Of a stretch of 64,000 nucleotides of DNA, positions 2,081-56,668 are shown piece after piece. The position numbers and the translations under genes were made by a program. The notes beneath the pieces were generated by a model. It was not told where the DNA came from and did not search any database. It saw only the letters and a program-made list of their open reading frames with translations. Position 1 is the first letter of the stretch. The number at the start of each line of letters is the position of its first letter. The stretch is from the NCBI GenBank assembly GCA_002269645.1, contig NIVC01003717.1, forward strand, positions 16,891 through 80,890, given 5' to 3'. This DNA comes from Macrostomum lignano. Taxonomy: Eukaryota.

Positions 2081-2998
2081 CTACATGTAAGTCAAAGTAG
2101 ATTACGTACATGTACATATAAGCAAATATGCTTGAATGTGACATGCGTATAGTTTTGAATAACTGCACATCCATTTGAAAATATTTAATATCGAGTCAGT
2201 CATTGACCAGCTACAACCGTGTCTAAGATTTGACCGGCCAGTGTTGAGGCGGCTGGCGGCTGAAAATGCAGAGTTTTTGCTAATGTGTTCTCATAATATA
2301 TAAATCTCGTCTCATATATATACTCGTAATTATACTACAATAAATAATACATGTACATGCAGTATATTGGGGGACGCAATTTATAAAAATTAACTACGAT
2401 GTAGACAACAGGAAAAGTCGATCGGCTACTGTTCATATATAAGCATGCTGCTATGCATGTCTGCTGTATAAGAATCCGTAAAAACTTCTGCTTTGCAATA
2501 GACTTTGATTGTCAGCGTATCAAAGCTATTTATTTTATATTGAAAAAATTAATTTGAAAGAAAAAATGTACACTAATCTTTTTTGACAACAGAAAATTGT
2601 ATACGTAATACTATCTATAAAAATACTACCGACAAAGTACATGCTAGAAGCATATAAGAAACATGTAGCTACGTGTACATTTGCTTTAGGATTTTTTAAT
2701 TATAAATTTCCATTGCAGTAATCTTACAGTTTTAATTATTTAAAAACATACAATGCGCTATGTATTTGAAAATAATATTTCTATACTCAATGATTTATTG
2801 CCCTAAAAATACCGCTACATAAAGCTTTAATTATTTTTACCAATTTGCTAAGTGTACTATGAATGTTGTGCTGACCCAATTCAGAACGCCTTGTTCTAAG
2901 CAGGACATGAATATATTGCAGTAACATGAGCTGAAGATAACTTAAGCAATCTCCATCGAACACGCGTTCCTTTGTGCACAATTGATTAATTTGGTTAG

Positions 2999-21833
<18,835 letters not shown>

Positions 21834-24462: not shown

Positions 24463-24535
<73 letters not shown>

Positions 24536-25043
24536 TTTAACAACAAAAAATATGCAACCCCGCATGCAAAATCAGTTAAAGCAGGGCGCGTCAGATGGCG
24601 CGCCGCAGAGCCTGGGAGCGAACAAAGTCCGCCCCGTTTGCAGTGTCGGACGCCCCAGCGTCGCACAGCAGGCAGTCCACGTATCGACGGGTTCGGGCCT
24701 GACCCCGCCTGAGCGGGCCCTGTAAGGTAAGCAGCAGGATGTCCTGAACAGGTTGGGGGCAGTAGCCCTCGGCCGGGATCACGTGGCCCGCCAGTTGAAG
24801 TCGCCGCCGGCGCAGGATGGTGGACGGGCGCTGCAGCTTGGCCCGATCGTACAGGGCCTCGGTCCCGACGCTCTCGTCAGCTCGAAAGGCCGCACGGAGC
24901 AGTCCTGAGTGCGCCGAGTCCAGCTGCCGCTCTAGCGTAGCCGTCAGCGTCCACGTCTCGGCGTTGTAGAGCAGGACGGTTTCGACCACCGCCTGCCACA
25001 GCCGAGCCCTCTGGCGGTCGGGCAGCGCTTCGGATTGGATGAC

Positions 25044-26560
25044 TTACTTACTTACTACTGACGGGGGGCGCAGGCGCCGCGAATAGGCCGCGAGGCCCCT
25101 ATCGCAACCCCAAGGTAAAAGAGCACAAGGATTAGCCTTGGGGGTGCGCCCAGTCCCCGCCAGTAGTCGGCAGGTCCGCAGTGGAGGCATCGGCGACCCT
25201 CATCCGGCCGGAGTCCCGGACGAAGGCGCGGAGGTCTCGGATATTGTCCGCGGTGGTCAGCTCGTCCATCCGCTGGGGGTGGCCGAGGTATTTGTGCCGC
25301 GCCTTGTTGAAGTAAGGGCAGAAGGTGACGTGATGCTCCGCGGTCTCCTCTCCTATGCCACAGAAGGGACAGGTGGGAGGGCAACCGGTTTGCAACGATA
25401 TATGTCTCTGGAAGAATCCGTGGCCGGTTAGGACCATGCACATCTCCCTGAGGTCGGTTCTGTTAAGCGAAATCAGATAATCAGAGACTTTCCTGTTCAG
25501 GTTAGGCATGGCAGAGCGGCTCTGCCTGTACTCGGTGCAGCTGTTCCAGTGGAGCTGGTGCTGCTGATGGAGCCACCTGTTGATATGGCGGGTGACTTGC
25601 GACCTGGGGGTGGGTAGCCTCATCAGACGGTGGTTGCCGTCTGGGTTGCTGCCCTCCTTGGCGAGAGAGTCCGCGAGCTCGTTGCCCAGGATGTTGCTGT
25701 GACCAGGTGTCCAGATAATTCTAATCCTGTTAAGGACTGAGAGAGATTGCACACTGCGGTGGCATTGAGATACTGTAGCAGCGGAGATATTCTCAGTGGT
25801 TAAGGCCTTAATAGCAGCTTGGCTATCAGTGTAGAAATTAATGTCAAAATTATTAATGTTCGCCTGAAACAGTTGCTGGGCACACTGCTCAATGGCGCAA
25901 ATTTCAGCTTGGAAAACTGAGGTGTTCTCACCGAGGTGCAGACTTTCCTGGAGAAGCATCTTACCCTCGTGGAAAATGGCAATACCCGCTCCAGCGCGGC
26001 CGTTGAACAGCGAGCCGTCGGTGAAGCAGTGAATGCCCTGGCTGCGCCGGTTCACACCGACATCCAGCGGAATGTTGTCTCGGCCAGGGATGGCGGTCTT
26101 GAAGCCCCTCCTGATGTTGAGGGCGGGAGGTCGACTATCCACATTGCCCAGGTCCATGTGGATGTTGTTAAGGTCGCGGCGGACAAAGTCCATATGCGGG
26201 ATTAATGTTTTCATTGGCATAAAGCCAGAGGGCGCGTTATTTAACGTTTTATCTCTGATAAGCCGGGAGGCAGACTTCATAGCCTTCGCCCTAATAAATA
26301 GGTGAAGCGGAGGTAGGTTAAGAATAGTGTTCAGCCCCTCGTAAGGGGTGGACGGGTACGCACCTGTGATGGCACGGCAAATGCTGCCCTGAAGCTGGTA
26401 CAGCCGCTGACGGGCGGCCTTCTGCTCCAGCACGCTAGTCCAGATGAGACTCGCGTATGTGATACTGGGCCGGATGATGCCGGTATAAATCCAACGGACC
26501 GTTCTAGGCGAGAGGCCCCAAGTCGGCCCGATGGCTCTGCGCAGCTGGGCAAAGCAGCGT
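25044..26560 (-). mobile_element. 5'-truncated LOA/R1-group non-LTR retrotransposon (RT C-terminus, RNase H, CCHC finger) nested in the RTE
   Basis: Open frame to stop 25132: [23 protein letters not shown], RNase H FTDGS / FQAEICAI / [11 protein letters not shown] / [23 protein letters not shown]...ETAEHH. (TAAG)n tail; 9-bp TSD TTGGATGAC at 25035-25043 and 26561-26569. Confidence 0.93.
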
Positions 26561-26879
26561 TTGGATGACGGCCCGGATTGAACGGAAGGCTGCCAAGGTA
26601 AGTCCTCGGCGCCGCCGTAGGTATTCCTCCACGTGAGGCACCAGACCGCCGAGGTAGGTGAACCGCTAGCAGCGTGCGAGCCTGGTCGTCTGCCCGTCTG
26701 CGCCGCGGCACGTCAGGTCCGCTGGGATGTAGGCCGGCACAGTCAGCACCTCGGTCTTCAGCGTGTTGACAACCAGACCGACGCTCCATGCCACCTCGAC
26801 CAGCCTAGCTGTCGATCTGGCGCTGGGCGCCTTCAACGGACGAGGACAGGAGGGCGAGGTCATCGGCGTAGCCAAGCAC

Positions 26880-26962
26880 TTGACTTAGCTTGACTTAGCT
26901 GCAGGGGGCTCTGTGCGTCCGGAAACAGAGTGGAGGCGTTGCCACCCATTTCGCTAACCCCT
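26880..26962 (-). mobile_element. 83-bp retroposed 3'-end fragment (LINE/SINE tail) inserted in the RTE YADD motif
   Basis: 15-bp TSD GGCGTAGCCAAGCAC at 26865-26879 and 26963-26977. Tandem tail (GCTAAGTCAA)2; small hairpin CTCTGT-N10-ACAGAG. Confidence 0.85.
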
Positions 26963-28248
26963 GGCGTAGCCAAGCACGCTCAGGCGCTTTTCGCCGTGGC
27001 GGCGACCGATGCGTCTGCGCAGCAGGAAGCCGTCGTCAGCCGAGGGGAGTGCGGTCCGAAGCACCCAGTCCAGCAGCAGCACGAAGAGGAACGGCGCCAG
27101 CGTGTCGTCCCGCAGAACTCCTGCATGAAGTGTCGAACAGGTCAGACAGGCTGAGTGTCGCAATACAGCGCCATGACAGCGTCGACTAGCTGCTGGGGTA
27201 CCCGGTAGGCTCGAAGACAAAAGGAAGCGCGGCTCTCAGCACCGAGTCAAATGCGCCTTGCGAAAGTCAACAAAGACAATGATCAGCGTAGACTGGCGGA
27301 TGTGCGCCTCCTCGATGACACGGCGGAGTGCAAGGATCTGTGTCACTGTACCGTGTTGCGGCCGGAATCCGTTCTGCTCGTACCGCAGGTACGGGTCCAG
27401 CACCGACAGCAGACGATCGAGCAGCAGCCGGTTGAAGAGCTTCGCGGTGCAGGGCATCAGCGAGATCCCGCGGTGGTCTTCTTTCCGCGTTGTCCCTGCC
27501 AATTCTTCGGCGAGTTTGAGCGCCTTCTAGACGAGCGGCAGCAGGCCGCTGTCGACGACGCCGTTCCGCGTCCATCACTGCAGCCGGCCCAGACGTGAAG
27601 AGCTGCGCAGTGTGGACGGCCGTCCGGACTCTAACGCGGCGCAAAAAGCGCGTGGCGCTGAATCTGGCCGGTGACACCTCGGAGGAGCGCAGAAAGGAAT
27701 TGCGCGATTTCTTTCTTCGCTGGCATCGTGAACGCGCCCGCGTCGCCGCTGCCCGCCAGCTTTGCGCTCCCACTGGACACGCTGCTCCCAGCTGAGGAGG
27801 ACTTCTGCACCAGACCAGTCACCACGGAGGACGTTGTGCTGTTCGCTCGGAAAAATTAAATGCGGCAAGGCGCTCGGTCCCGACGAAGTCCCGCCGGTCG
27901 AGGCGCTGCGGCTCCGCTGTGTGGCCTCCCAGGTCACAAGCGTCATGAACCGCGTGCTCGCCGGCGCCCCCGTGCTCACCGAGTGGACCGTCGCGCACAT
28001 CGTGCCGACTAATAAGGATGTTTCCCAATTGTGTGTCTTGTACAGTATAAATACATGTGTACTCCACAGGTACATAACATGTTAGACACCATATGCGTTT
28101 AACCACATTCTCTATACTTAAAAAAGATATTTACGTAACAATAATGCAACAATAATTAACACAAGTTTTGCTATCTCAATATTGAAGTCATATTCTCGGG
28201 AGCTCGAGTGGAGTGAATGACGACTAGTGTAAATTTTCATATATTTAA

Positions 28249-30810
28249 CCTCTACGCGACGGGTGGGGTTTAGCATCACCCCTGTCGCCGACGGCTGTCC
28301 CGAAATCGGGACATAGACTATTGGAGAGTCGCTAGAGTTGCTGCTGCAGCACCCCCTTTCCCGCCGGTTTCTCTCTGTCGCGACTGTCGTAGTCATTTCT
28401 TCAGTTCATCTGCACTTGTCTCTGTTTACTGTTTCTTCCCTCTTGGTCCAGTTCAGTCTTGTTATTTTTATCTGTTTCCATCGCTGCCTTCTGATTGGCT
28501 CTTCAACCTCGCCTCTTTTTTAGTCACGAGTTCCACCCCCTCATTTTATTATCTTCACTCCCCCCCTAGTTTAATGTCTTTTAAATATATTCGTTTAGGG
28601 CCCTGTCCAATTACAATTAAATAGCCTCTCTTATTTTTCCTGCACTTTCACTCTAACTATATATTTACTGTCTCACTGGCTGCTGCGCTTCCTCGCGTTG
28701 TTCTTGCCATGGAATCTGAAAACGAATACGCAGAAATTTTCACTGATGACGACTCGCTGGAGTCGCTAGATGGAGTCGAGGACGAGATTACGGAGGAAGA
28801 AGGCGAAGAAGCAGAAGAAGAAGAAGAAAGCATGCAGACAGAGGAAGTTGGTGATGTACCAGAGTGGCAGTTTGTTCAGGCTGGAATGGATGCTGTGCCG
28901 AATGAAGCCGAGTTTCTGGGAACACCAGGGGTTCGCCCAGATTGGAGGCCTCCAGCTTCAGCTGATGGAAACGAAGAGGAGTTTCTGCGTCTGTACCTCA
29001 CTGATGGAATTATTGCAAGCGTGAAAACCTGGACGAATCGTAGGGCGTGGAAGATATTCGAGGAGTGCGCTGACGAAGAGCAGTTGCCGAAGCTGGTAAA
29101 GAACTGGAAAGATTGTACAGACGATGAGGTGAGGAAGCTGTTCGGGATTGTTCTGTTGATGGGCCTGGACAAAAAGCCGGAGATCAGCAGCTACTGGAGC
29201 CAGGACCCTGTTTTCAATTGCTCCTTTCTGTCCATGCCCAATGCCCTCTCGAGAGATAGGTTCAAGCAGCTGCTTTCCTGCCTTCGTTTCTACGACTGCA
29301 CGGATGTTCAGGAAGGGCCCTTGGCCAAAATCCAGCCATTTTTACACCAGCTGCAACAGGTGTGCAGCAACAATTACATGCCGCGTCAGCACATTTCCGT
29401 GGACGAAACGCTCGTCTTGTACAAGGGGCGTCTGCTGTTCAAGCAGTACATCCCGACTAAGAGCAGATACGGTGTCAAGCTGTACTGCCTGTGCGAGTCG
29501 GAGACTGGCTACTTGTGGAATTTCGCAGTCCACTCCACGGAGCACGCGAATGCACAGTTTGGACTGGGACTCGAGTGCGGCGGCCTCTCTATTAGTGAGC
29601 GAATTGTGGCCGAGCTGTGCCGTGAACTCCTGCACATGAATTATAACGTGTTCACGGACAGCTGGTTCACGTCGCATCGGCTGGCCGTTTGGCTGCCAGC
29701 AAATGGAACTCGGCTGACCGGCACTGTGCGCAGCAATCGAGGCGTCCCGCAGTTGCTGCAGCAACTGCAACTGCGACCGACTGCGGCGGCTTTCGCGAGG
29801 AACGGTGAGGTGCTCGCTTGTAAGTTCGTGGACAGGAAGAGCAGCGGAACAAAGACCGTGTATCTCCTGGACACTGCTGGGCAGGCTGCCTGTGTGAACG
29901 TGCCACGAGTCCGTCGGGGAGGCGAGCAGCAGGTGATCGCGAAGCCAGTGACAGTGGTCACCTACTCGAAGAGTATGGGCGGCGTGGACCGTATGGATTC
30001 GGCAGCGAACCCCTACCTGGCCAGCCGGAAAACGCTGCGCTGGTTTCAGAAACTCGCGTTTTACCTGCTGCTGCTTCTGGTTCGTAACTCGTGGATCGTC
30101 TACCGCCAGCACGGAGGTACCAAGACTTTCGTGGCGTTTCTGCGCAAAGCGGTCAGTATTTTGGTGGAGGAGACTGGCAGGGGCAGGCGCCATTTCGCTG
30201 TCAGGGCAGGCCGTCCTGCAGCAGTCGGACCGGCAGGTGACGGCCCTGCAGTACAGCATTTGCCGACCAAAGCTCCATTGAACGCTGCCAATGTTCGGCC
30301 GCGCAATCGATGCCGCGTGTGCAGCGAGAACCGAATCGCGAAGAAGACCGTGTACATATGCCCTGATTGTCCGGGAGTACCAGCACTTTGCATAGGCCAG
30401 TGCTTTAGAAACTGGCACAGCCAACCGCACTGACTGTTACAGACCTCGTCTTCATGTTTTTTTCTTCCACACCCCCGGTTGACTTTGCTCTCTCCATTCC
30501 TAACCCGCTCTCCTTTTTGTCCCCACCCTTGAATAAAATTAAAGTAAATATTTATGGAGTACCCTTACAAGGAGCTTTCCGTTGCTATGGTGTCAATCCA
30601 AAATTATCTGTTCTAATCCTGGTTCTGTTCTGTTAGCACTTTCACTTGTTTTAAATTAAAATAAAGCAGTGTGTCCCGTTTTTGGGACATAGCCGTCGGC
30701 AACGGCAGTGCAGCGCAGCTGCAGTTTTGACCATAGAACTTAGTTTTAAGTTTTCGGCTGCAGCAGAAGTGGCTGCTTGTCCCGTATTCGGGACATCCGT
30801 CGGCTTACCG
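28249..30810 (+). mobile_element. Apparently full-length piggyBac DNA transposon
   Basis: TTAA at 28245-28248 and 30811-30814. Shared terminal/subterminal motif (GC)CGACGG-N-TGTCCCG-N4-CGGGACA at ~28287-28313 and inverted at ~30671-30700 and 30780-30804. Single long transposase ORF. Confidence 0.88.
28709..30433 (+). CDS. piggyBac transposase, 574 aa, uninterrupted
   Basis: Acidic N-terminus; DDD triad ISVDETL / VFTDSWFTS / MGGVDRMD; KYGVKL-like RYGVKLYCLCES; C-terminal cysteine-rich domain CRVC...CPDC....LC...CF..WH. Confidence 0.95.
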   Translation: MESENEYAEIFTDDDSLESLDGVEDEITEEEGEEAEEEEESMQTEEVGDVPEWQFVQAGMDAVPNEAEFLGTPGVRPDWRPPASADGNEEEFLRLYLTDGIIASVKTWTNRRAWKIFEECADEEQLPKLVKNWKDCTDDEVRKLFGIVLLMGLDKKPEISSYWSQDPVFNCSFLSMPNALSRDRFKQLLSCLRFYDCTDVQEGPLAKIQPFLHQLQQVCSNNYMPRQHISVDETLVLYKGRLLFKQYIPTKSRYGVKLYCLCESETGYLWNFAVHSTEHANAQFGLGLECGGLSISERIVAELCRELLHMNYNVFTDSWFTSHRLAVWLPANGTRLTGTVRSNRGVPQLLQQLQLRPTAAAFARNGEVLACKFVDRKSSGTKTVYLLDTAGQAACVNVPRVRRGGEQQVIAKPVTVVTYSKSMGGVDRMDSAANPYLASRKTLRWFQKLAFYLLLLLVRNSWIVYRQHGGTKTFVAFLRKAVSILVEETGRGRRHFAVRAGRPAAVGPAGDGPAVQHLPTKAPLNAANVRPRNRCRVCSENRIAKKTVYICPDCPGVPALCIGQCFRNWHSQPH

Positions 30811-31160
30811 TTAAGCAACGTCAGTTAAATATCTCTAAATTGATTTGGTATAAACGTTAATACTGAAGTTTTTTATCTGCAAGTTTAAATTATAATTAAA
30901 AAAAATTTAGATACTTTAGATGGTGGCTATATTTTAAAATTATATGTATGGCGTATGGCGTACATATATGCGTATGATGTATGGCGGCTCACCCATGCAG
31001 CCAGGAGCCAGTTGACACTTAATAAAATTGTCCTATCCTAGTCTTCGAAGCCTGCTATTGCTATGGCGTTTTAGATATTTTCTACTATTTCATTTGTGTG
31101 TTTCCTGCTCATATTTGATAGTTCATAGAAATTCATTAGGTTTAGGGCCTAGTTCATATT

Positions 31161-31850
31161 GATTGTATTCCATTTCGGTAACAGCCACTTTGGTAACAAA
31201 AAATGACCACTTCAGTAACAGCCATTTCGGTAACAGCCACTACGGTAACAAGTGAGAATAATATATAAAATGTATTAATTGATAGGTCTATGCTCCGAAA
31301 GAATGTGCGAACAAACTTTGAAGAAAGAACGACAACGACAACGCAGGTATGCATTTGTTTAAGTTGTTTAAGAATGTTTTAACCGATCTATTTAATTTCC
31401 GGATGAGTCAAAAACATGCATGCACCCGAGACATCCTGTAATTGACCAAATATTGTGTACCGTGTACATTAGAATCTCTGATCTAGTTAGCGAATAGCGA
31501 CTTGATACTACAGAATCTACTTTCTTTATTAATACTTCTTAATACTTTCTTTATTAGTTATTTAAAATATTTAAAATATATTTTTTCAATTTCAACGTAT
31601 GGCCAGGCAGGCTAGCTCGCGCGCGGTTTAATTAATTTTATTTGCCTTTAAATTTTTTACAAAGTTAACGCGCAAGTTTAAACAAAGTATAACACAGTTT
31701 AACTAGAAAGTTTAACGATATGTGACAATAAGATATTTGAGATGTTAATTGTTAAACTAACTATAGCAAAGCTAATTATTATAAAAATAAAGTGTTGACA
31801 GTCGTAAATTTGCGTTACCGAAGTGGCTGTTACCGAAATGGCTGTTACCG
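31161..31850. mobile_element. Non-autonomous DNA element (Mutator-like) with inverted subterminal tandem motif GGTAACAGCCA(C/T)TTC
   Basis: Motif repeated at 31170-31255 and inverted at 31813-31850. 9-bp direct repeat GTTCATATT at 31152-31160 and 31851-31859. The extreme left terminus does not match the right perfectly. Confidence 0.6.
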
Positions 31851-32475: not shown

Positions 32476-32646
32476 CTACTTGGGTGCAACCTAGGGATTC
32501 ACCTGGCCATTTCTATTGGCAACATATACATGTAAGTCATTATTGGATGGAATAGTAGTCACGTAACTACTCTTAGCCAATAGTGACTTATATGTGTGTG
32601 TTGCCAATAGAAATGGCCAAGTGATTCCTAAGGTTGCATGTGTATG
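32476..32646. mobile_element. 171-bp hairpin MITE
   Basis: Arms TGCAACC...GGCCATTTCTATTGGCAAC...AAGTCA.TATTGG are near-perfect inverted repeats; 8-bp TSD TCTAAAAC at 32468-32475 and 32647-32654. Confidence 0.85.
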
Positions 32647-32986
32647 TCTAAAACTGTCATTTATAGCCAAAATTTGTTGTGTATTTTTTTCTGGCCTGCT
32701 GCCTTTGCCAGTCTTTTAATCTGACCTTCACTGAAAAAAGTTTGCTGACCCTTAGCTTAGGTTAGGGCATATACTACTTTTTATTTTTTTATCACTTCTT
32801 ATAATAATAAATATAATAAATCTAAGTTTTTATTGAACAAAATATAATGTAGACTTTTGATTTCAAATGCAAATTAAACAGACTTTTGATCCAAATATCT
32901 TTATAAGCCACTTTGTTAATGAAAAAATGATGTAAATGCATTGGTATAGATTTTCTAAAGATAATTTTTTTGATATTCATTATTTT

Positions 32987-33589
32987 CATACATGCGCAAC
33001 CTCCAAAATTTGGTTGGCCGTGCGACTTAGTTTTAACAAAAATGCGACATAGTTTTTGGCCAAAAATGCGACTTACACGTTAAAAATTCGTAAAGCAAAA
33101 TTAAAGCAACTTTGGGTAAACGGCAGGAGTAACTATGACTGTCTTATAAGGGCCCCTATTGCAGCGCATGGCTTAAGTACGCCAGATGCCTACACAACCT
33201 GCGCCACGCTGTGAAATGACTTACCTGTGAAAGAAACCCTAAAGCAAAATTAACGCAGTTTTGGGTAAACGGCAGGAGTAACTATGACTGTCTTATCAAG
33301 CCTAAATGCCTCAGCATCTAATTAGTACTACGCCCGTATTCTATGGGGTGGCATTTTTGCGACTTACCCCTGGTCCACCACCAATGCTGCGCCACGCAGG
33401 CTGATCCGCGCCAGACGCCGTCCGCCAAAATGCCCATGCGCTGCAATCAGGATAAGGGCTAAATGCCTCGTCATCTAATTAGTACTATGTCCGTATTATT
33501 TGGGGTGGGCATTTTTGCGACTTACCCCTGGTCCACCACAATTTACGGTGGCCAGATCGGCCAGGTCGGCCAGCAGTTGCGCATGTATG
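32987..33589 (+). mobile_element. MITE family A copy 1 (TIR CATACATGCGCAAC), carries a 28S-rDNA-like core, interrupted by family B
   Basis: 14-bp perfect TIRs; 8-bp TSD ATTATTTT at 32979-32986 and 33590-33597; 297 bp after removing the nested element and one TSD. Confidence 0.92.
33154..33451 (+). mobile_element. MITE family B (TIR CC(CT/TG)ATTGCAGCGCATGG), 298 bp, nested in family A, same 28S-like core
   Basis: TIRs at 33154-33171 and 33434-33451; 8-bp TSD ATAAGGGC at 33146-33153 and 33452-33459. Confidence 0.9.
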
Positions 33590-34126
33590 ATTATTTTTCT
33601 TAAGCAAGTTACTCTTCTTAAATAATACTTAGCTATTTAAAGTAATAAATATAGAGCATTTGTTGTTAGATTAGACCCTACTTTCTATTTTTGATATCTT
33701 AGTTCTAATTTATAATTTAGGCATCAAAAAGCAAATTAGCAAACTGGGGTATAGAAATACTAGGTACCAAATGCATAGATACCTTAATTCTAATGCTAAT
33801 AGCTTTTTTATCATATATTTAATATAGTGAGAAAATAAAAATGATACTAATAGTTTCACCCATTAGTCTATTACTCATTAACAAATATAAATGTTACATA
33901 TTATATAGAAATGGCTAAGATTGTTTTGATCTTAACTTTAGTTTCTTTTGTTACAATTCTATTAATGTGTATATAGTATCAAAAATCTATTGGCAATATT
34001 CAATTATTTCTATTGATTTATAATCTTAAATATATGTATTATGGATATGATTTCTTTGGTTCAAATATTATATGCAAAGTGTAATATGTTTTCCATTTAT
34101 ATTAAATATGAGGGGTTAAAAGCTAT

Positions 34127-34424
34127 CATACATGCGCAACAGTCGGCCGAGTCAGCCGATCTGGCCGACCAATTTGGCAGCCAACCAAGGTAAGTTGCAA
34201 AAATTGCCACCCCAAAGAATACAGATGTAGTACTAATTAGGTAACGAGGCATTTAGCCCTTATAATACAGTCATAGTTACTCCTGTTGTTTACCCAAAAT
34301 TGCGTTACTTTTGCTTAATGGTTTCTTTCACAGGTAAGTCACATTTTTGGCCAAAAACTACGTCACATTTTTTGTTAAAACAAAGTCGCACAGCCGACCG
34401 AATTTTGGAGGTTGCACATGTATG
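34127..34424 (-). mobile_element. MITE family A copy 2 (298 bp, opposite orientation, empty site)
   Basis: TIR CATACATG(C/T)GCAAC; 8-bp TSD AAAGCTAT at 34119-34126 and 34425-34432; 28S-like core at 34232-34295. Confidence 0.92.
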
Positions 34425-34656
34425 AAAGCTATTAGCAAATAGCCACTAAACTAAAAAAAGGAGGTAGAAAGTCTAACAATAAACTATTACAAATTTATAT
34501 ATAGAAAAAGTCAAACTGTTATTTAACTATAATAACCTAATATGAGCTAAGGTAATATTTATACTATTGAATTGTAAGAGGGAGAAAAGTGCTTCTTTAT
34601 GAGCTTAGCTGATCTTATTTATTAGTTTAGCAATAAGGTAGTGCATATAAATAGAT

Positions 34657-34699
<43 letters not shown>

Positions 34700-34709
<10 letters not shown>

Positions 34710-34970
34710 TGCATAACCTCTTTGATTTGCACTGGCTATGCAACTTTTTTTGACCAAAAATCCAACTTACCTATGAAAGAAACCTAAGCCAATTAATGTA
34801 TGTTTTGGTAAACAATGGGAATTAGTATGGCTAGATATTATTAAATCTAAATGCCTCATAATCTAATTAGTACTAGTCTATTTTTGGGTGGGCATTTTTG
34901 TAACTTAACTTGGCTGGGGCTATTGCTAGCCAGCTAGATTGGCTGGGTCTTATGGATGTATGCATGTGTG
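34700..34970 (+). mobile_element. Old decayed copy of MITE family A
   Basis: Collinear remnants ACTTACCTATGAAAGAAACC, GGTAAAC, TAAATGCCTC..AATCTAATTAGTACTA, GGGTGGGCATTTTTG; ends degenerate, no TSD visible. Confidence 0.7.
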
Positions 34971-35774
34971 CATGGGGTCCCATGTATTTAAAGGGTTGAA
35001 TACTATGCTATTCAAATCACTAAGCTAGTCAATAGCAATGGCCATTGCTAGTGAGTCAATAATTCAGTGTAGGCAACCTAATGCAAAGTTCATTGTATCA
35101 TTATATCATAATAACAATATAAATAGTAAGAAAAAAAGATATTTTCAGAGTTAACTTGTCAGTTTTGTCAATATTTATTTATATTTATTATATTTTATAG
35201 TTGACTTATTCGAATACAAGGAAATACTTTTATATAAATGTGTACTAAGATCTCATATTGTCTTAGGAAATAGATCCAAACCAGCATTGACCATTCTCAT
35301 TCTTGCTTAATTATGCTTTGTCCATGAACTTTCTATCTAGGGTCTATCAAGATAGTGTCTTATGCAAATGAGAAAATGAATTGGTATGCCTATATACTTG
35401 AGCACATAACAGTTCTACCATAGTTAAAGATATTGCTATGTTTATGAGAAGTTACTGATATGGGGTTTTTTAGACAATATATTTATATGGATGTTTATGA
35501 AAATACACATTTTCCATATCTGTATCTAGGCCACTGAATAACTTTGTCTAAAGTTGATGGGCATTGAGTGTCACAGATACATTCTGCGCTATCTATGGAG
35601 CATAGAGACTGCATTCTAGCAACTGTAACAACCAGTAGCTAGAAGTACCAATGCCCCATTTGTGACATAGTCGCTAAGTACTGCTTAGATAGACTGACGG
35701 CAAGAAAGTATATAATAGCAGCCTTAGTAAATTTCTTTTGCATTTGTAAATTTCATCAAGCCAGTCTACAAGCA

Positions 35775-38700
35775 ATGGACTTGGACGCTATTGACAATGA
35801 AGATCAGGAATTTTCTCTACGCGAATCTTGCGGTGTCTATGGCGCCATTTTATTTAACAGTGGCATCAACTCTGAAGCTACGACAGCCGGAGCAAGTTAC
35901 AGAAATACGAGTTCCATGTTAGACTTATTAGTGTTAGGCATGACTGCTCTGCAGCACAGAGGTCAGGAGTCAGCTGGATTAGTGGTGTCAGATGGCGGGC
36001 CAAAAATCTGTGTGCAGCGTGGCATGGGCCTGGTGGCGCAGGCCTTCACGCCTGAACGGTTGGCTTCCTTGTTAGGCGCCGATAAGCCAGTTTGGCGTTT
36101 GGGCCTCGGGCATACTCGGTTGGTTGCTTGTGTTTTACTACTTACTCAGTAGGCAGTTAAGTCTGTTTAGAATTGCTCAGTAATCACCCTGGAAATCTGC
36201 TCAAAGAATCGCCCCTCAAAAAATCCCCCCTCAAAGAATCGCCCCTCAAAGAATTACCCCTCAAAACAGCGCCCTCAAAGAATAACCCCTCAATGAATCG
36301 CCAACTAAAGAATCGCCCCTCAAAGAATCACCCCTCAAAGAATCGCCCCTTAAAAATCGCTCCTTAAAGAATCGCCCCTCAAAGAATCACCCCTTTAAAG
36401 AATCGCCCCTTAAAGCATCGCCCCCAAAGCATCGCCCCTTTAAGGCATCGCCCTCCCAAAGAATCGCCCCTCAAAGCATCCCTAATTAAATTATCACCCC
36501 CTTAGAGAATCGCCCCTCGAAGAATCGCCCCTCGAAGAATCGCCCCTTAAAAATCGCTCCTTAAAGAATCGCCCCCCAAAGAATCGCCCCTCAAAGAATC
36601 GCCCCTCAAAGAATCACCCCTTTAAAGAATCACCCCTCGAAGAATCGCCCCCAAAGCATCGCCCCTTTAAGGCATCGCCCTCCCAAAGAATCGCCCCTCA
36701 AAGCATCCCTAATTAAATTATCACCCCCTTAGAGAATCGCCCCTCGAAGAATTCGCCCCTCGAAGAATCGCCCCTTAAAAATCGCTCCTTAAAGAATCGC
36801 CCCCCAAAGAATCGCCCCTCAAAGAATCGCCCCTCAAAGAATCACCCCTTTAAAGAATCACCCCTCGAAGAATCGCCCCCAAAGCATCGCCCCTTTAAGG
36901 CATCGCCCTCCCAAAGAATCGCCCCTCAAAGCATCCCTAATTAAATTATCACCCCCTTAGAGAATCGCCCCTCGAAGAATCGCCCCTCGAAGAATCGCCC
37001 CTTAAAAATCGCTCCTTAAAGAATCGCCCCCCAAAGAATCGCCCCTCAAAGAATCGCCCCTCAAAGAATCACCCCTTTAAAGAATCACCCCTCGAAGAAT
37101 CGCCCCCAAAGCATCGCCCCTTTAAGGCATCGCCCTCCCAAAGAATCGCCCCTCAAAGCATCCCTAATTAAATTATCACCCCCTTAGAGAATCGCCCCCC
37201 AAAGAATCGCCCCTCAAAGAATCGCCCCTCAAAGAATCACCCCTTTAAAGAATCACCCCTCGAAGAATCGCCCCCAAAGCATCGCCCCTTTAAGGCATCG
37301 CCCTCCCAAAGAATCGCCCCTCAAAGCATCCCTAATTAAATTATCACCCCCTTAGAGAATCGCCCCCCAAAGAATCGCCCCTCAAAGAATCGCCCCTCAA
37401 AGAATCACCCCTTTAAAGAATCACCCCTCGAAGAATCGCCCCCAAAGCATCGCCCCTTTAAGGCATCGCCCTCCCAAAGAATCGCCCCTCAAAGCATCCC
37501 TAATTAAATTATCACCCCCTTAGAGAATCGCCCCTCGAAGAATCACCCCTCAAAAATCACCTATCAAAGAATCGCCCTCAACCAAACAGACAGCAAACTA
37601 ACAAGGTACAGCATATATTATACATCTGTACCATCCGCCGCCACCATAACGCCAGATACTCCACCCTGGGCGCCTCAGAATCAATCAACTGTCAACCGTT
37701 CGTTGTTGAAACAACCTGCGGCCAATTTGCCGTAGCCCACAATGGCGAACTGGTGAATGCTAACAGATTAAAATCTGAAATACTACAAGCCGGTATTGGT
37801 CTGAGCACGGACACGGATAGCGAGTTGATCACACAGATGCTGTGCACCAGATCTCCTAGCCAGTGCTGGACAGAACGGATCACCTATTTCATGTCCAAAT
37901 GCTCCACGTCATATAGCCTGCTGATTCTGACTGGCGATTCTATCTACGCTGTCAGAGACCCGTTCGGTAATAGGCCTCTGTGTCTGGGAGAGATTCTCTG
38001 CGGCGAGTGAGTTGCTCACGTCTGTGTGCGAGCTGCTTTTTATTTGTACTTGTGTTTTATTGCTTGGCATACTTCTATCCTCTCTCTGTCTCCCTGTCTC
38101 CCTCTCTCCCTGTCTCCCTCTCTCTCTGTCTCCCACCCTGTCTCCCTCCCTGTCTCCCTCTCTCCCTGTCTCCCTCTCTCCTTGTCTCCCTCTCTCCCTG
38201 TCTCCCTCTCTCCCTGTCTCCCTCTCTCCCTGTCTCCCTCTCTCCCTGTCTCCCTCTGTCTCCCTCTCTCCCTGTCTCCCTGTCTCCCTGTCTCCCTCTC
38301 TCCCTGTCTCCCTCTCTCTCTGTCTCCCACCCTGTCTCCCTCCCTGTCTCCCTCTCTCCCTGTCTCCCTCTCTCCCTCTCTCCCTGTCTCCCTCTCTCCC
38401 TGTCTCCCTCCCTGTCTCCCTCTCTCCCTGTCTCCCTCTCTCCCTGTCTCCCTCTGTCTCCCTCTCTCCCTGTCTCCCTGTCTCCCTCTCTCCCTGTCTC
38501 CCTCTCTCTCTGTCTCCCACCCTGTCTCCCTCCCTGTCTCCCTCTCTCCCTGTCTCCCTCTCTCCCTCTCTCCCTGTCTCCCTCTCTCCCTGTCTCCCTC
38601 TCTCCCTGTCTCCCTCTCTCCCTGTCTCCCTCTGTCTCCCTCTCTCCCTGTCTCCCTCTCTCCCTGTCTCCCTCCCTGTCTCCCTCTCTCCCTGTCTCCC

Positions 38701-41700
38701 TCTCTCCCTGTCTCCCTTTCCCTGTTTCCCCCACTTTCCCTAATCCCACTTCCCTTTAATTTCCCTACTATCACATCATTCTCCAGTCTCCTACACAAGG
38801 TTTATCTTCTCAGATTCCCATTCCCCTCTTTTCCCTCATAAATTCTTCCTTTCGGCTCTCTGTTCCCTCTGCTAAAGTCAGTCTAATTCTGCACATTCTT
38901 CAACAGGTCGCATTATAATTTACTCACAAGCCAAATTTCCACTCTCTCATATCGCAGCGAAGTCATCGGCTACGCCGTATCATCCGAGAGTTGCGCATTC
39001 CAATCCACCAGCACTAGGCTGCTTCGCGAAGTTCAACCAGGCGAAATTGTTCGCCTGTCGATTCAACAACAGCCTGAATTGTCTGGCGCCGCCAGTACTA
39101 TTGAAACCTGCGCCATCGTACCCCGACCGTCTGCTTCTTCTAGTAGCAATGCAACTGGGGCGTCTGAGTCTACCGCGGTTTTGCCCGCTATGTGTATATT
39201 TGAGTACGTGTACTTTGCTCGGCCGGATTCTCAATTCGAGGGTCAGCAGGTAAATTATCAACACGTCGAGTTTTATTCCGTGTCTTCTACTTATGAGTAG
39301 AAATATGCGCATCTTATCATTCCTTTTACATGGTTTTCATCTTACATGATGTGTGTTAGTTAATTTTAAAGCAGGTCTAACGACTCAAACGACTGCAATG
39401 CGACGTTGAGTGGACACCTCTAAGGGCGCTTTTCTAGCATTATAGAAGCCCTCTTTAGAGTCATTATAGAAGCCCCCTTTAGAGTCATTTTAGAAGCCCC
39501 CTTTAGAGTCATTATAGAAGCCCCCTTTAGAGTCATTATAGAAGCCCCCTTTAGAGTCATTATAGAAGCCCCCTTTAGAGTCATTTTAGAAGCCCCCTTT
39601 AGAGTCATTATAGAAGCCCCCTTTAGAGTCATTATAGAAGCCCCCTTTAGAGTCATTATAGAAGCGCCCTTTAGAGTCATTATAGAAGCCCCCTTTAGAG
39701 TCATTATAGAAGCCCCCTTTAGAGTCATTATAGAAGCGCCCTTAGAGTCATTATAGAAGCCCCCTTTAGAGTCATTATAGAAGCGCCCTTTAAAGTCATT
39801 ATAGAAGCGCCCTTTAGAGTCATTATAGAAGCGCCCTTTAAAGTCATTATAGAAGCGCCCTTTAAAGTCATTATAGAAGCGCCCTTTAGAGTCATTATAG
39901 AAGCGCCCTTAGAGTCATTATAGAAGTGCCCTTTAAAGTCATTATAGAAGCGCCCTTTAGAGTCATTATAGAAGCGCCCTTAGAGTCATTATATAAGCGC
40001 CCTTTGAGTCATTATAGAAGCGCCCTTTGGAGTCATTATAGAAGCGCCCTTTGGAGTCATTATAGAAGCGCCCTTTGAGTCATTATAGAAGCCCCTTTAG
40101 AGTCATTATAGAAGCGCCCTTAGTAACTCAGAGACGCTTGTTGACCTAGGTACCATTTTCATCGGGGCTGTCTTGCCCACAGCACGGAATCAGTAATCAA
40201 ATGATCCTGTTTTCCTTAACCCCTACTTACCGAGTAGCAAATTATGCGAATTTTCTCTATTCTTTTCTTATTTAGGTTTATTCTGTAAGACGTCGATGCG
40301 GTGCTCAGTTGGCCAGCGAGAGTCCCTGTTCAGTAGATTTGGTTTCTACAGTGCCAGAGTCTGCCACTCCAGCTGCCATGGGCTATGCCAGCGCCTGCGG
40401 ACTGCCTTATGTGGAGGTTTGCTGCAGTTCTCTTTGCAGTGTTCTCGGTGTCTTGGGTTATCCAAATGGAACTCCTCACTGTTAGGCCCGTTGGGAGCCA
40501 GCCTCCTAGATCCTCAGTTGCTGGGCCAGCCTTCCAGATCCTCAGTTGCTGGGCCAGCCTTCCAGATCCTCGGTTGCTGGGCCAGCCTTCCAGATCCTCA
40601 GTTGCTGGGCCAGCCTTCCAGATCCTCAGTTGCTGGGCCAGCCTCCCAGATCCTCAGTTGCTGGGCCAGCCTTCCAGATCCTCAGTTGCTGGGCCAGCCT
40701 CCCAGAGTGTCAGTTGCTGGGCCAGCCTCCCAGATCCTCAGTTGCTGGGCCAGCCTCCCAGAGTGTCAGTTGCTGGGCCAGCCTCCCAGATCCTCAGTTG
40801 CTGGGCCAGCCTCCCAGATCCTCAGTTGCGGGGCCAGCCTCCCAGATCCTCAGTTGCTGGGCCAGCCTCCCAGATCCTCAGTTGCGGGGCCAGCCTCCCA
40901 GATCCTCAGTTGCGGGGCCAGCCTCCCAGATTCTCAGTTGCTGGGCCAGCCTCCCAGATTCTCAGTTGCTGGCCCAGCCTCCCAGATTCTCAGTTGCTGG
41001 GCCAGCCTTCCAGATCCTCAGTTGCTGGGCCAGCCTTCCAGATCCTCGGTTGCTGGGCCAGCCTTCCAGATCCTCAGTTGCTGGGCCAGCCTCCCAGATC
41101 CTCAGTTGCTGGGCCAGCCTCCCAGATCCTCAGTTGCTGGGCCAGCCTTCCAGATCCTCAGTTGCTGGGCCAGCCTCCCAGAGTGTCAGTTGCTGGGCCA
41201 GCCTCCTAGATCCTCAGTTGCTGGGCCAGCCTCCCAGATCCTCAGTTGCTGGGCCAGCCTCCCAGAGTGTCAGTTGCTGGGCCAGCCTCCCAGATCCTCA
41301 GTTGCTGGGCCAGCCTCCCAGATCCTCAGTTGCGGGGCCAGCCTCCCAGATCCTCAGTTGCGGGGCCAGCCTCCCAGATCCTCAGTTGCTGGGCCAGCCT
41401 CCCAGATTCTCAGTTGCTGGGCCAGCCTCCCAGATTCTCAGTTGCTGGGCCAGCCTCCCAGATTCTCAGTTGCTGGGCCAGCCTCCCAGTGTCAGAGCCC
41501 ACTCTAACCCGACCCCATCTGCCCTCAGGTATTCTGCAAGAACCGCTACATCGGTCGCACCTTCATACAGCCCAGCAATCTGCTGCGTCAAGTTGGCGTA
41601 GCAAAAAAATTCGGCGTCATCGAAGAGAACGTACGCGATAAGCGCATCGTGCTCATTGACGACTCCATTGTTCGGGGCAACACAATGGGCCCTATTGTTA

Positions 41701-43560: not shown

Positions 43561-43957
43561 AGTTAAATAGAGATGTTAAGGCAATGATGTAAGCATGATT
43601 TATGTTTTTGGCAATCTCTTCTCCAGACGAAGTTTAGGGTTACGCAAGCAAGTCTTGCTGTAATTATAAGCAATTACATATAATCAGGAACACACCCGGC
43701 TAGTGCATAAGCCTCCATTTTAGCTCACTGGGCAGTCCACACCAAGAAAGGAATCACATTGGCTTAGATGTGACAGCAAGTCTGCAATAACGATAGTTTT
43801 AAATGCACCTATAATTTTCGAGGAATTTTTCACCTTTCCTGCATTTCTGATCCCCAGCTGTTACAAGTTAAGACCTCGATAGCCAAGGAACCAGCAAGTG
43901 CCGGCATAGCAACTTATCGTTGACAGCTACTGAAAGATTGGTTGGATTTCGTATGTG

Positions 43958-46900
43958 ATGGCAGAGGGTGTCAGTATTTCGGCTCCGAATCTTATATACG
44001 GTGGGCCATCCACGTCACAGAATAGTAGTAGTACTAATACTGAAAGCAACAGGAACAGCAACAATAATAATATTAACCATGCTGATGGCAATTCCTCCTC
44101 AGCTTCTTTGTTTGAATCGCGCTCGGACACGTCAGAAACATCATCCGTAGTACTGGAGGATGGTAATCAGAATCCCACTGTTGGTTTAGCCACTGAACAA
44201 GCTCAACAAGATGATAACGAAACAGAACAACAGGAAGTTAACGTTGTTATCGATATTAACGATGAGAATGCGAATGCCACTACTAATAACAATAATAACG
44301 ATAATGATGCAGATAATTATGATAATGAACCACAGAACGACGCTCTCGTTGGCGAGATTATTGATTTGACAGATGATGTGCCTGGTCAAATCCATCTGCC
44401 GCAGCCTATAATGATTGAAGATCTTGATAATGATGATAATGAACTGGACGATTTCCTTGTCATTGACGATCTGAGACGTTCAACTAGTAATAGTCGTCGA
44501 AGAGTTACGGCTCCTCCAGATGCTAGAACTTCTTCGCGTAGACGACAACAGCAACGGCTTGATTCGCATCCGGAATCTGGGGCATCCAACTCCAGGGTTA
44601 TCGTTAAGAAGCGTCGATTAAGCGACGGTGAAGGACCGTCTGGAAGTGGTACAACGGCGGCTTCTTTAAGTCCTCCTCAACCTGCAGATGAAGGTTGCAC
44701 AATCTGTTTTGAGCCCTGGACATCGTCTGGCGAGCATCGAGTCTGCGCGTTGCGTTGCGGCCATCTGTTTGGCAAATCTTGCGTCGAGCGTTGGTTAGAA
44801 ACCCGGCAACAGTGCCCGCAGTGCAATAGAAATTGCCGACGTCACGAAGTGCTGCCCTTGTATGTTACCAATCTCAGAGCTGTAGATAATAGCGAGAATG
44901 AAGCTCTAAAACTCGAGATTGACAAGATTAAACGAGCTAAACTAACCGCCGAGCAGGAGGCTGGGGACATGCGGTTGAGACTAGACATGCTCAGAGATGA
45001 GAACAGGCGACTATCTCGCCAATTGGAGTTCTATCGAAGTCATTCTTCCAAGCTGACTATTGATCTGACCGATGCTGGCGGCGAGACTTGCTCTTATCAT
45101 TTGGAAGACAATGTCATGATTTCTCAGGTGGGTGGATGCGAGGTCATGATCCCTATAGATGCCTGTTTAGAATGGGTCATGATCCCTATAGATGTGTCTG
45201 TTTAGAATGGGTCATGATCCCTATAGATGTGTTTAGAAAGGGTCATGATCCCTATAGATGTGTTTAGAATGGGTCATGATCCCTATAGATGTGCTTAGAA
45301 TGGGTCATGATCCCTATAGATGCCTGTTTAGAATGGGTCATGATCCCTATAGATGTGTCTGTTTAGAATGGGTCATGATCCCTATAGATGTGTTTAGAAT
45401 GGGTCATGATCCCTATAGATGTGTTTAGAATGGGTCATGATCCCTATTGATGTATGTTTAGAATGGGTCATGATCCCTATAGATGTGTCTGTTTAGAATG
45501 GGTCATGATCCCTATAGATGTGTTTAGAATGGGTCATGATCCCTATAGATGTGTTTAGAATGGGTCATGATCCCTATAGATGTGTCTGTTTAGAATGGGT
45601 CATGATCCCTATAGATGTGTTTAGAATGGGTCATGATCCCTATAGATGTGTTTAGAATGGGTCATGATCCCTATAGATGTGTATGTTTAGAATGGGTCAT
45701 GATTCCTCCAAGTCAATAGGAGATCTCCCTAACTAATCAACCGCCTCTTTGCGCTTCCCAGGTAGGCGAGTGCCGAGTACTCGCTCTCAACCAGCAGCTC
45801 GACGTGCTGTGCATCTCCCAGCCTAGCCGAAATCCTCTATTCCGCGGCTACGGCCTTCGCAAGTTGGATTTAGTAGACTTTCGCAATTCCAGCTACATTC
45901 ATTTGCACACTAATAAACTGCGGGATGCCTGCTTTAATCCCGAGGGCACCCTGCTGCTCACCGCCAGCATGGACAAGCAGATCAGGTTAACCGGCTTTCA
46001 CTCCGAGCAGACTGTTTGCTATTTCGATTGCCCCACAGCTGTGTGGTCCTGCTGCTGGAGTCCGTATGATCCCAATCAGTTCTATGCAGGCCTAGCCAAT
46101 GGCAGGGTGATGTGCTTCGATATGCGTCACATTGGCAGTCACGTGAGCGTGCTGCCGTGCGCCGAAGAGCCGCCCAGTGTCACCTCGGTGGTGTCCATGG
46201 CTTCGGTGAGTGCGGCGGCGCCCCTCTCCTTGAAAAATCTGAATCCCCTCCTTTGTCAAAATCGACAAAATCCGCCCCTTAAAAAATTATTTAAAAATCC
46301 GCCCGTTAATTAAAAAATGCGCCCTTCCAGTTTTCTTTAAATCCGCCCTCACAAAAATCTACTAAATCCGCGCCCTCCTTATAAAAATCTACTAAACCCG
46401 CCCCCTCATTATAAAAATCTACTAAACCCGCCCCCTCATTATAAAAATCTACTAAACCCGCCCCCTCATTATAAAAATCTACTAAACCCGCCCCTCATTA
46501 TAAAAATCTACTAAATCCGCCCCCTCATTATAAAAATCTACTAAACCCGCCCCCTCATTATAAAAATCTACTAAACCCGCCCCCTCATTATAACAATCTT
46601 CTAAATCCGCCCCATTAAAAGCTACCAAAAACCGCCCCATACCGCCAGCTGCCAGCCGGTGCCCCAGCCGCAGGCGTCGCTGCACCATCAGCTTTGCTAG
46701 CCGGCCAGTTTGATCGGCTGAGTCTCTACCGTCGGCCAGCGGCAGTCGCCGCAGCCGCAGCAGCAGCAACCGAAGCCGACAATCACCAGGCCGCACTGCT
46801 CCCGATGCCCGGCCCTGGCAGCGGTCAACAGCTGGCTTGGCTGGCCGCAGATCCAGACAGTCGACACGTCCTGTTGACTCACCGACCGACTGCCAACCAC

Positions 46901-47299
46901 CAGCAACAGCAGCCGCAGCAGCAACGTCCGGGTGTTGAGCACTCCGTCTACAGTTTAGATTTCATTCGCACCAGCGCTGATAGCAGCGATTCGACAGCAA
47001 CCATGGAATCCGCACTGAGACCTCTGAGTCGAATTCGAGCTGGCCAATCGATGAAGCTCCTAGCTAGGAGTCGACTATTTCAACAGGCTAGCAGATCCGG
47101 CGGAGCTCTGACCGTGGCGGCCGGAGATGAAGCTACCTGTAGGTTAAACCTGTGGGACGCGGCAACTGGAGAGAAGCTGCAGTCCATGGCTAGACTGCCC
47201 AGTCCAGTGCTGGACATTGCGCCAGTCAGGCATGGCCGGTTCCTCGCCTGCCTGACAGAACAGTCGGTGTATGTTTATAAAGATACTAAAGCTGAGTGA
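43958..47299 (+). CDS. RFWD3: E3 ubiquitin ligase RFWD3 (RING + coiled coil + WD40), 3 exons, ~754 aa
   Basis: Exons 43958-45127, 45762-46205, ~46649-47299. RING CTICFEPWT.SGEHRVCALRCGHLFGKSCV..WL....QCPQC is RFWD3-type; WD40 with LLLTASMDK, WSCCWS, FYAGLANG.V..FD.R, AGDEA. Confidence 0.92.
45140..45705. repeat. ~31-35-bp minisatellite (GGGTCATGATCCCTATAGATGTGTTTAGAAT) in RFWD3 intron 1
   Basis: Seen directly. Confidence 0.95.
46260..46620. repeat. ~31-bp minisatellite (AAAAATCTACTAAACCCGCCCCCTCATTAT) in RFWD3 intron 2
   Basis: Seen directly. Confidence 0.9.
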
Positions 47300-55785: not shown

Positions 55786-56329
55786 CAAATAGTAGAAGCC
55801 AGTTTTGCGTCAGTCCACGCTAGGGAACTTAATAATTGGAGGAAGTTTGGTTGTTCTCATGCTTAGTCCGATGGGGGCAGCATTTGCTTCGATGCGAAGC
55901 GGTCTTTCAACAAGTTTCTTTTCTTTTAGCTTGTGGAAGATAATTGCCGGTGAAAATCGGCACTTTGATGTCACTTCCCAGCCCTCCCCCATCTTCTGTC
56001 GGGAGTTTTTTCTCTTTTTTGTTCTAATTTTAGCTGTATTTCTTCTTGTATCGTAGGGGACACTTTGCTCGTCACAATATTGGTAGCTAGGCGACTCTAG
56101 TGAAAGCGCACGGGATGCTTTAATTCAATTGTTGCTACAATATGTTCTGTAAGCATTTTTCTTAATTAAATATAATTACAAAGTTAACAGCAATCGTTCC
56201 ATTTATGATATTTGTCTACCGTGTGTCTTATTAATTTGTACTTTGGTGTAGCTTATATGCGTCATATTGTAACTCTGGAGATCCACTAGGAATCGTTAAG
56301 AATCTTCATCTGCACAAAATCAGTGGAAT

Positions 56330-56630: not shown

Positions 56631-56668
56631 AAAAATGAACCTACAAAAATTGCCATTCCCAGCCAGCC

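Follow-up and report, generated by a model that had tools for sequence, protein, structure and literature searches.

The window analysed in the current study is a 64,000 nt stretch of contig NIVC01003717.1 of the flatworm Macrostomum lignano (assembly GCA_002269645.1). [quoted passage not shown] The piece runs from position -36 to position +28 relative to the R2 nick, i.e. the stretch of 28S at which the retrotransposon R2, the homing endonuclease I-PpoI and the transposon Pokey act. It was probably captured a single time, as passive filler, in the founder of the A family, amplified with that family and then captured into the B family, and it does not appear to be a working mimic of the rDNA target site. 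All four elements sit where an earlier note on this DNA had placed them, and that note's description of them as non-autonomous elements with terminal inverted repeats (TIRs) and 8-bp target site duplications (TSDs) agrees with the six TSDs that were read and with the closure of all six reading frames.

The elements and their 28S-derived piece

The A and B elements are 235–298 bp in length (B-free length in the case of A1) and have stops in all six frames. They display the properties by which MITEs are recognised: TIRs, a TSD of fixed length at independent insertions, small size, absence of coding sequence and presence in multiple copies. The features in the window are as follows.

32979–32986 (no strand): left TSD copy of A1, ATTATTTT, by direct reading; an identical 8-mer lies at 33590–33597
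32987–33589 (+): A1, with a 14-bp TIR, CATACATGCGCAAC, at each end; TSD ATTATTTT
32987–33153 (+): A1 left part, with TIR CATACATGCGCAAC and three AAAAATGCGAC(T/A)TA subterminal motifs
33114–33153 (+): first 40 nt of the A1 28S-like segment; 28S profile match 33099–33146, E = 1.2e-7
33146–33153 and 33452–33459 (no strand): TSD of B, ATAAGGGC, 8 bp, by direct reading
33154–33451 (+): B, 298 bp, nested in A1; TIRs CCCTATTGCAGCGCATGG / CCTGATTGCAGCGCATGG
33263–33326 (+): B's own 28S-like segment; 28S profile E = 4.5e-13; Rfam large subunit (LSU) rRNA match 33217–33339
33452–33589 (+): A1 right part, comprising the second B TSD copy (33452–33459), right arm and TIR
33460–33483 (+): last 24 nt of the A1 28S-like segment; 28S profile match 33454–33483, E = 2.8e-5
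33590–33597 (no strand): right TSD copy of A1, ATTATTTT, by direct reading
34119–34126 and 34425–34432 (no strand): TSD of A2, AAAGCTAT, by direct reading
34127–34424 (-): A2, a complete A-type element of 298 bp; nhmmer MITE model E = 1.4e-94; TIRs as in A1
34232–34295 (-): A2 28S-like segment, uninterrupted; 28S profile E = 4.2e-11
~34705–34971 (+): A3, a decayed A-type element; nhmmer MITE model E = 2.4e-61; TSD not definable
~34806–34871 (+): A3 28S-like remnant; 28S profile only E = 0.07

A3 adjoins, or starts in, a (TA)n microsatellite, and a pattern search located TAAATGCCTCATAATCTAATTAGTAC within it at 34848–34873. An exact search of the window for the 64-mer given in the earlier note returned no contiguous match, with both halves present exactly, because that sequence is a reconstruction made across the B insertion (A1 minus B and minus one TSD copy). 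A2 carries the unoccupied sequence CTTATAAGGGCTAAATG, a paralogous empty site for the B insertion, and the reconstruction is therefore confirmed.

An nhmmer model of the copies detected four more in ~48 kb of unrelated M. lignano sequence (contigs L001, L002 and L123 of assembly GCA_002269645.1), giving a sample of eight copies from ~112 kb of non-overlapping M. lignano DNA (~129 kb searched in all).

L001 20381–20673: full A-type copy; TSD T(A/G)TACGCA
L002 14590–14825: short A-type copy; TSD TTCATGCA
L002 ~15420–15660: decayed A-type copy
L123 1135–1432: second B copy (B2), ~97% identical to B of the window; TSD ACCTAAAC

The six TSDs read (ATTATTTT, AAAGCTAT, T(A/G)TACGCA, TTCATGCA, ATAAGGGC and ACCTAAAC) are all of 8 bp. 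The density of one copy per 12–14 kb, extrapolated from this small sample, implies that the A and B families are very abundant, and exact-pattern scans of metagenome and viral contigs gave no copies outside M. lignano. In the short A-type copy of L002 (14663–14728, -) the centre of the 28S piece has been replaced by an unrelated 8–9 nt (GTAACATCACTGCT), with the sides intact. This looks like a local repair footprint, and is at the same spot where B entered A1.

The 28S derivation claimed for the segment proved to be real. The 64-mer matches the 28S sequence quoted in the earlier note at 56 of 64 positions without gaps, and agrees at 49 of the 53 overlapping positions with a published R2 target oligonucleotide, which fixes the canonical 28S sequence (PMC13000458, Table 1). 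The last 11 nt of the 64-mer lie beyond the end of the oligonucleotide and match a 28S pattern found exactly in at least 120 metagenome contigs. An nhmmer profile of 469 columns, built from 75 real eukaryotic 28S sequences from metagenomes, is matched by every intact copy at about columns 186–253 (66–68 columns; E = 2e-14 to 1e-9) and by the split halves of A1 separately (1e-7 and 3e-5), and the MITE copies were its only matches across the ~129 kb of M. lignano DNA. The Rfam model LSU_rRNA_eukarya aligns with the core of B (33217–33339) at model positions 2199–2320 (E = 0.0016), with a score, obtained on a 176-nt stretch, of 21.5 bits, which is below the gathering score of 50. No LSU match was returned at the gathering score, nor at E-value over 2 kb.

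With such a score, and with homology limited to 64–66 nt, the segment is neither a 28S gene nor a 28S pseudogene, and no rRNA gene was found in the window; the earlier note had seen no other rDNA nearby. The edges of the homology are sharp (GGGTAAAC ... AATTAGT), and the flanks are no more 28S-like than shuffled sequence, as 199 of 300 shuffles on the upstream side and 186 of 300 on the other score as well. An extension of the homology into the flanks is ruled out by this test, and with it the suggestion that the upstream GTGAAAGAAA..AAGC resembles adjacent 28S sequence.

All A and B copies have in common a set of derived differences from 28S, namely GGCAGGAG, GACTGT, GCTAAAT and a rearranged centre, the base changes being G to A in GGCGGGAG, C to G in GACTCTC and C to T in GCCAAAT. 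That the same differences are seen in every copy indicates that the 28S piece was acquired once, in a capture that predates the split between the A subtypes and B. In the ancestral consensus the left 29 nt carry 2 substitutions and the right 23 nt none, while the central 12 nt have gained TTA and lost TAG. The differences thus cluster at the cut site, as had been noted previously, and the rearranged centre is exactly where R2, I-PpoI and Pokey act.

What the two families share is larger than the 28S piece. The arms of A and the GC-rich arms of B are unrelated (~25% identity), and between them lies a common module of ~165 nt, with GACTTACCTGTGAAAG... at one end, ...GCGACTTACCCCTGGTCCACCAC at the other and the 28S piece between them. 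Identity between A and B is 86% in the 28S piece and 79–81% in the non-28S parts on either side of it (~45 nt and ~45–55 nt). At its ends the module has units of AAAAATGCGACTTA, a subterminal motif of the A family found three times in the A left arm, and the 28S piece lies between the subterminal repeat motifs of both arms. It was a module, and not the mimic, that passed between the families. At ~97% identity to each other the B copies are young, and the A copies, at ~80% over their full length, are older. Long, short and decayed A subtypes were seen, and the right side of the B module is closest to the A1 subtype (38/42).

Function and origin of the 28S piece

The earlier note had proposed that the segment is kept as a target-site mimic, serving as a decoy, landing pad or homology guide, and this found no support. 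A1 reads CTGTCTTATAAGGGC where the I-PpoI/R2 core is CTCTCTTAAGGTAGC, a mismatch at 6 of 15 positions, and the family consensus GTATTATTAAGGCT is without TAG, i.e. the 3' side of the R2 nick (which falls between AAGG and TAGC). At the level of sequence the I-PpoI/R2 recognition core is destroyed. As regards helix-69 of the rRNA, the G to A and C to G changes each break a different stem pair, leaving four of six pairs according to the Rfam structure line; no excess RNA folding was detected in either the 64-mer (z = -0.37) or the 150-nt core (z = +0.21), and the predicted fold does not contain helix-69. A role in RNA structure is ruled out by the broken pairs together with the ordinary folding energy. 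B is inserted exactly at the R2-equivalent site of A1, but the target of B2, ACCTAAAC, is unrelated and not 28S-like, which rules out that B inserts specifically at the 28S site. Except for the one B in A1, no insertion of R2 or of any other site-specific element was found in the eight copies. Furthermore, the 28S piece is only the middle of the ~165-nt module, and its excess of conservation is modest (see below). The alternative offered in the same note, in which an rDNA piece or footprint was captured, conflicts with none of the observations.

The course of events that best accommodates these data, and the one we favour, begins with an A founder that would have formed, probably through the abortive repair of a gap left by the excision of a larger element, when 64–66 nt of 28S rDNA were copied in as filler between two transposon ends. 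A block of filler that had been inserted would be expected to show the sharp edges of the 28S piece and the lack of 28S likeness in its flanks. As a multicopy sequence that rDNA-specific elements break at exactly this site, rDNA is a likely donor, and the donor copy may already have borne a repair scar of the R2/Pokey site, CTTATTAAGGCT (TTA gained, TAG lost), a notion that fits the clustering of the changes there. From the A founder a high-copy family then arose, with long, short and decayed subtypes; the B family is younger and carries the same module. A fragment of an abundant A copy would have been captured as filler in a new B-type deletion derivative. The 28S piece would have been carried passively throughout, with the presence of B in the 28S-like centre of A1 representing one ordinary nested insertion.

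Several observations weigh against this account. The gap-repair origin, like the scarred donor and the direction from A to B, is inferred. The capture is centred on the sole R2/I-PpoI/Pokey site of 28S, and the only nested insertion is also there, which chance does not predict. Lastly, the 28S piece diverges more slowly than the adjoining core, its outer parts at about half the rate (Fisher p = 0.014). Expressed as mismatch to the consensus over seven lineages, which are few and not independent, the values are 11.8% for the whole 28S piece (10.3% for the left 29 nt, 21.4% for the central 12 nt, which is the most variable part, and 8.7% for the right 23 nt) compared with 17.4% for the adjacent non-28S core. 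The 28S segment is therefore better kept than its surroundings, as the earlier note had considered it might be, but only modestly, and other, non-28S patches such as GGGCATTTTTGCGACTTAC are equally conserved; in the A-type trio, conservation reaches 91% in the left arm against 86% in the 28S piece. The difference hints at heterogeneous rates and does not amount to evidence of selection, although with eight copies the test is underpowered and selection is possible.

Selection on MITE masters that retains the segment as a decoy, landing pad or homology guide for an rDNA-site-specific factor could account for its extent (-36 to +28 around the R2 nick), for the somewhat better preservation of its outer parts, for its persistence in two TIR families and for the position of B at the equivalent site of A1. 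The high variability of the centre (21%) is also what repeated insertion and excision would give. R2 lineages are known in flatworms (not established for M. lignano), and fish R2 elements carry a 28S-like sequence in their 3' untranslated region (PMC5035012). A mimic function nevertheless seems very unlikely, as the ancestral consensus already has a ruined core (with 6 of the 15 I-PpoI positions changed and no TAG at the nick), B2 has targeted an unrelated 8-mer, no R2 or other insertion occupies the site in the eight copies except one B, and the surplus of conservation is slight and also seen outside the segment. Equally improbable is the more specific proposal that the block is a maintained surrogate of the rDNA target site, with tens of thousands of MITE copies presenting a near-cognate site to an rDNA-specific endonuclease or transposase of M. 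lignano (R2 or an unknown DNA transposon that targets 28S), which would be titrated away from rDNA or would seed insertions outside it; the hypervariable centre would then record repeated cutting and repair. In a weaker version, the block may be a fossil repair scar from the R2 site of an rDNA unit, kept and amplified by the MITE.

Another possibility, less probable than a capture by the A founder but still to be taken more seriously than a mimic, is that the ~165-nt core is an independent dispersed repeat, e.g. a 28S-derived retroposon or an older element, that was taken up separately by A and B. The boundaries in A and B are similar and the module is bracketed by a direct repeat, GACTTACC / GCGACTTAC. 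This repeat, however, is one unit of the A subterminal motif (present three times in the left arm) and so belongs to A, and in the ~129 kb of M. lignano DNA the module was detected by nhmmer only inside TIR-bounded A and B elements, never as a solo copy. The closeness of the right side of B to the A1 subtype (38/42) also fits an origin from an A copy. As for chance similarity, rDNA contamination or an assembly artefact, the Rfam score (21.5 bits) falls short of the gathering score of 50 and no LSU match appears over 2 kb, but each intact copy matches the profile of real 28S sequences at E = 2e-14 to 1e-9, with nothing else matched in ~129 kb, and the copies have their own TSDs at different loci, both in the window and in the three contigs of GCA_002269645.1. 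These results refute such explanations, and their likelihood is negligible.

Superfamily and comparison with known systems

The earlier note had described the elements as hAT- or P-like. The TSD length of 8 bp fits either superfamily. Elements of the hAT type have a terminal YARNG motif and a target preference of nTnnnnAn. The termini CATAC (A) and CCCTA (B) do not fit this pattern, and T2 and A7 are not found together in any of the six TSDs, so that hAT in particular is not supported by termini or TSD sequences. No autonomous partner came to light: the window and the three additional loci contained neither further TIR-A or TIR-B ends nor any transposase domain of the hAT or P type. Assignment to piggyBac is excluded by the TSDs, all six of which are 8 bp and none TTAA.

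Non-autonomous hAT elements such as maize Ds-l4 contain filler DNA and fragments of genes (PMC3260210). Like the elements described here, Ds-l4 and Ds2 have short TIRs, an 8-bp TSD, no coding sequence, and an interior that is unrelated to the transposase gene and partly copied from the host (PMC3260210). In contrast to these, the piece captured in M. lignano is rDNA, the elements are high-copy, the same filler has passed to a second TIR family, and the termini (CATAC..., CCCTA...) depart from the hAT terminal pattern.

Pieces of rDNA are also known from other transposable elements (TEs), namely SINE28, and Pokey with its intergenic spacer (IGS) repeats (PMC10946416). Pokey and mPok, piggyBac elements of Daphnia (PMC3849761, PMC10946416), similarly comprise a DNA transposon and MITE derivatives that are tied to rDNA and contain internal rDNA-derived sequence, and Pokey inserts at TTAA inside the very 28S stretch that is copied in the M. 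lignano MITEs. However, Pokey duplicates TTAA, resides within rDNA and contains IGS repeats, whereas the MITEs have 8-bp TSDs, are located outside rDNA and contain 28S coding sequence. SINE28 of mammals (cited in PMC10946416, Table 2) is likewise a dispersed repeat built around a 28S rDNA fragment. It is, however, a retroposon, while the MITEs are of the TIR/TSD cut-and-paste type and the 28S piece makes up ~20% of their length. The R2 lineages of actinopterygian fishes with a 28S-like 3' untranslated region are also mobile elements that contain 28S sequence, as an internal, diverged copy of the stretch next to the R2 site (PMC5035012); its acquisition was likely concurrent with an apparent shift of insertion site, and these elements are still rDNA-targeting retrotransposons. 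In the present case there is no retrotransposon, no targeting of rDNA and no evidence of use.

Diagnostic strings of the MITEs occur in none of the papers searched, and the M. lignano TE and piRNA papers that were checked make no mention of MITE, hAT or rRNA-like repeats. A 2024 review of the interplay between rDNA and TEs lists no MITE with a fragment of 28S coding sequence (PMC10946416). The A and B elements are a new example of a known phenomenon, unrecorded in that review.

Genomic neighbourhood and implications

Just upstream of A1 lies a near-perfect hairpin element (32485–32638), probably of another MITE family, in which a 30-nt loop separates arms of 62 nt that are 87% complementary. 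A TIR-bounded element of ~680 bp (31170–31848) has ends consisting of repeated GGTAACAGCCA-type motifs, with inverted arms of 35–42 nt at 86–97% identity.

A complete piggyBac element (28245–30814, +), with TTAA on both sides, is situated 2.2 kb upstream of the 8-bp-TSD MITEs. It has an open transposase ORF of 574 aa (28709–30433; PF13843, E = 7e-67) with a C-terminal zinc finger, 98% identical to a M. lignano BOX15 protein, and a copy that is 97% identical is present on L001 (9571–12112). The element has probably been active recently and is unrelated to the MITEs, a link between them being ruled out by TSD type.

Retroelement sequences are also present. At 13416–15269 (-) there are ORFs with GIY-YIG and reverse transcriptase domains in a Penelope-like arrangement, fused in-frame with nucleoside transporter exon sequence and lying inside a nucleoside transporter gene annotated on L123. 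A GC-rich remnant with an RNase H domain (24500–28100, -) has dozens of partial matches, 92–100% identical, in chimeric UniRef gene models of M. lignano. Minisatellite arrays are exceptionally dense over the window (e.g. 8545–12060, 53238–55790, 36200–37581 and 40497–41489), with periods of 15–45 bp and up to 110 copies (73 rows in Tandem Repeats Finder, TRF), and account for strong local swings in GC skew. The repeat-rich stretch is flanked by host genes, namely an RFWD3-like E3 ligase with a RING finger and an RFWD3 WD40 domain (43955–47296, +) and an exon encoding a Vps18/Pep3 beta-propeller (56639–57289, +). An innexin exon is 100% identical to BOX15_Mlig007683g2. M. lignano is a neopolyploid flatworm. 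The window is 95–98% identical, but not identical, to NIVC01000421.1 of GCA_002269645.1 (window 1–13268 versus L123), so that it represents another haplotype, subgenome copy or assembly.

If the 28S piece is indeed a passively carried filler, these elements provide a clean and datable case of serial filler capture, from rDNA into A and from A into B, in an animal MITE. By extrapolation there are tens of thousands of dispersed 28S-like 64-mers in the M. lignano genome, and caution is called for in practice, as these will draw rRNA annotation, rRNA-depletion probes, small-RNA mappings and R2-site searches. If instead the block has a function, it would be the first known case of a decoy spread genome-wide for an rDNA-specific mobile element, and would be relevant to the way in which the target specificity of R2-type elements is lost in flatworms.

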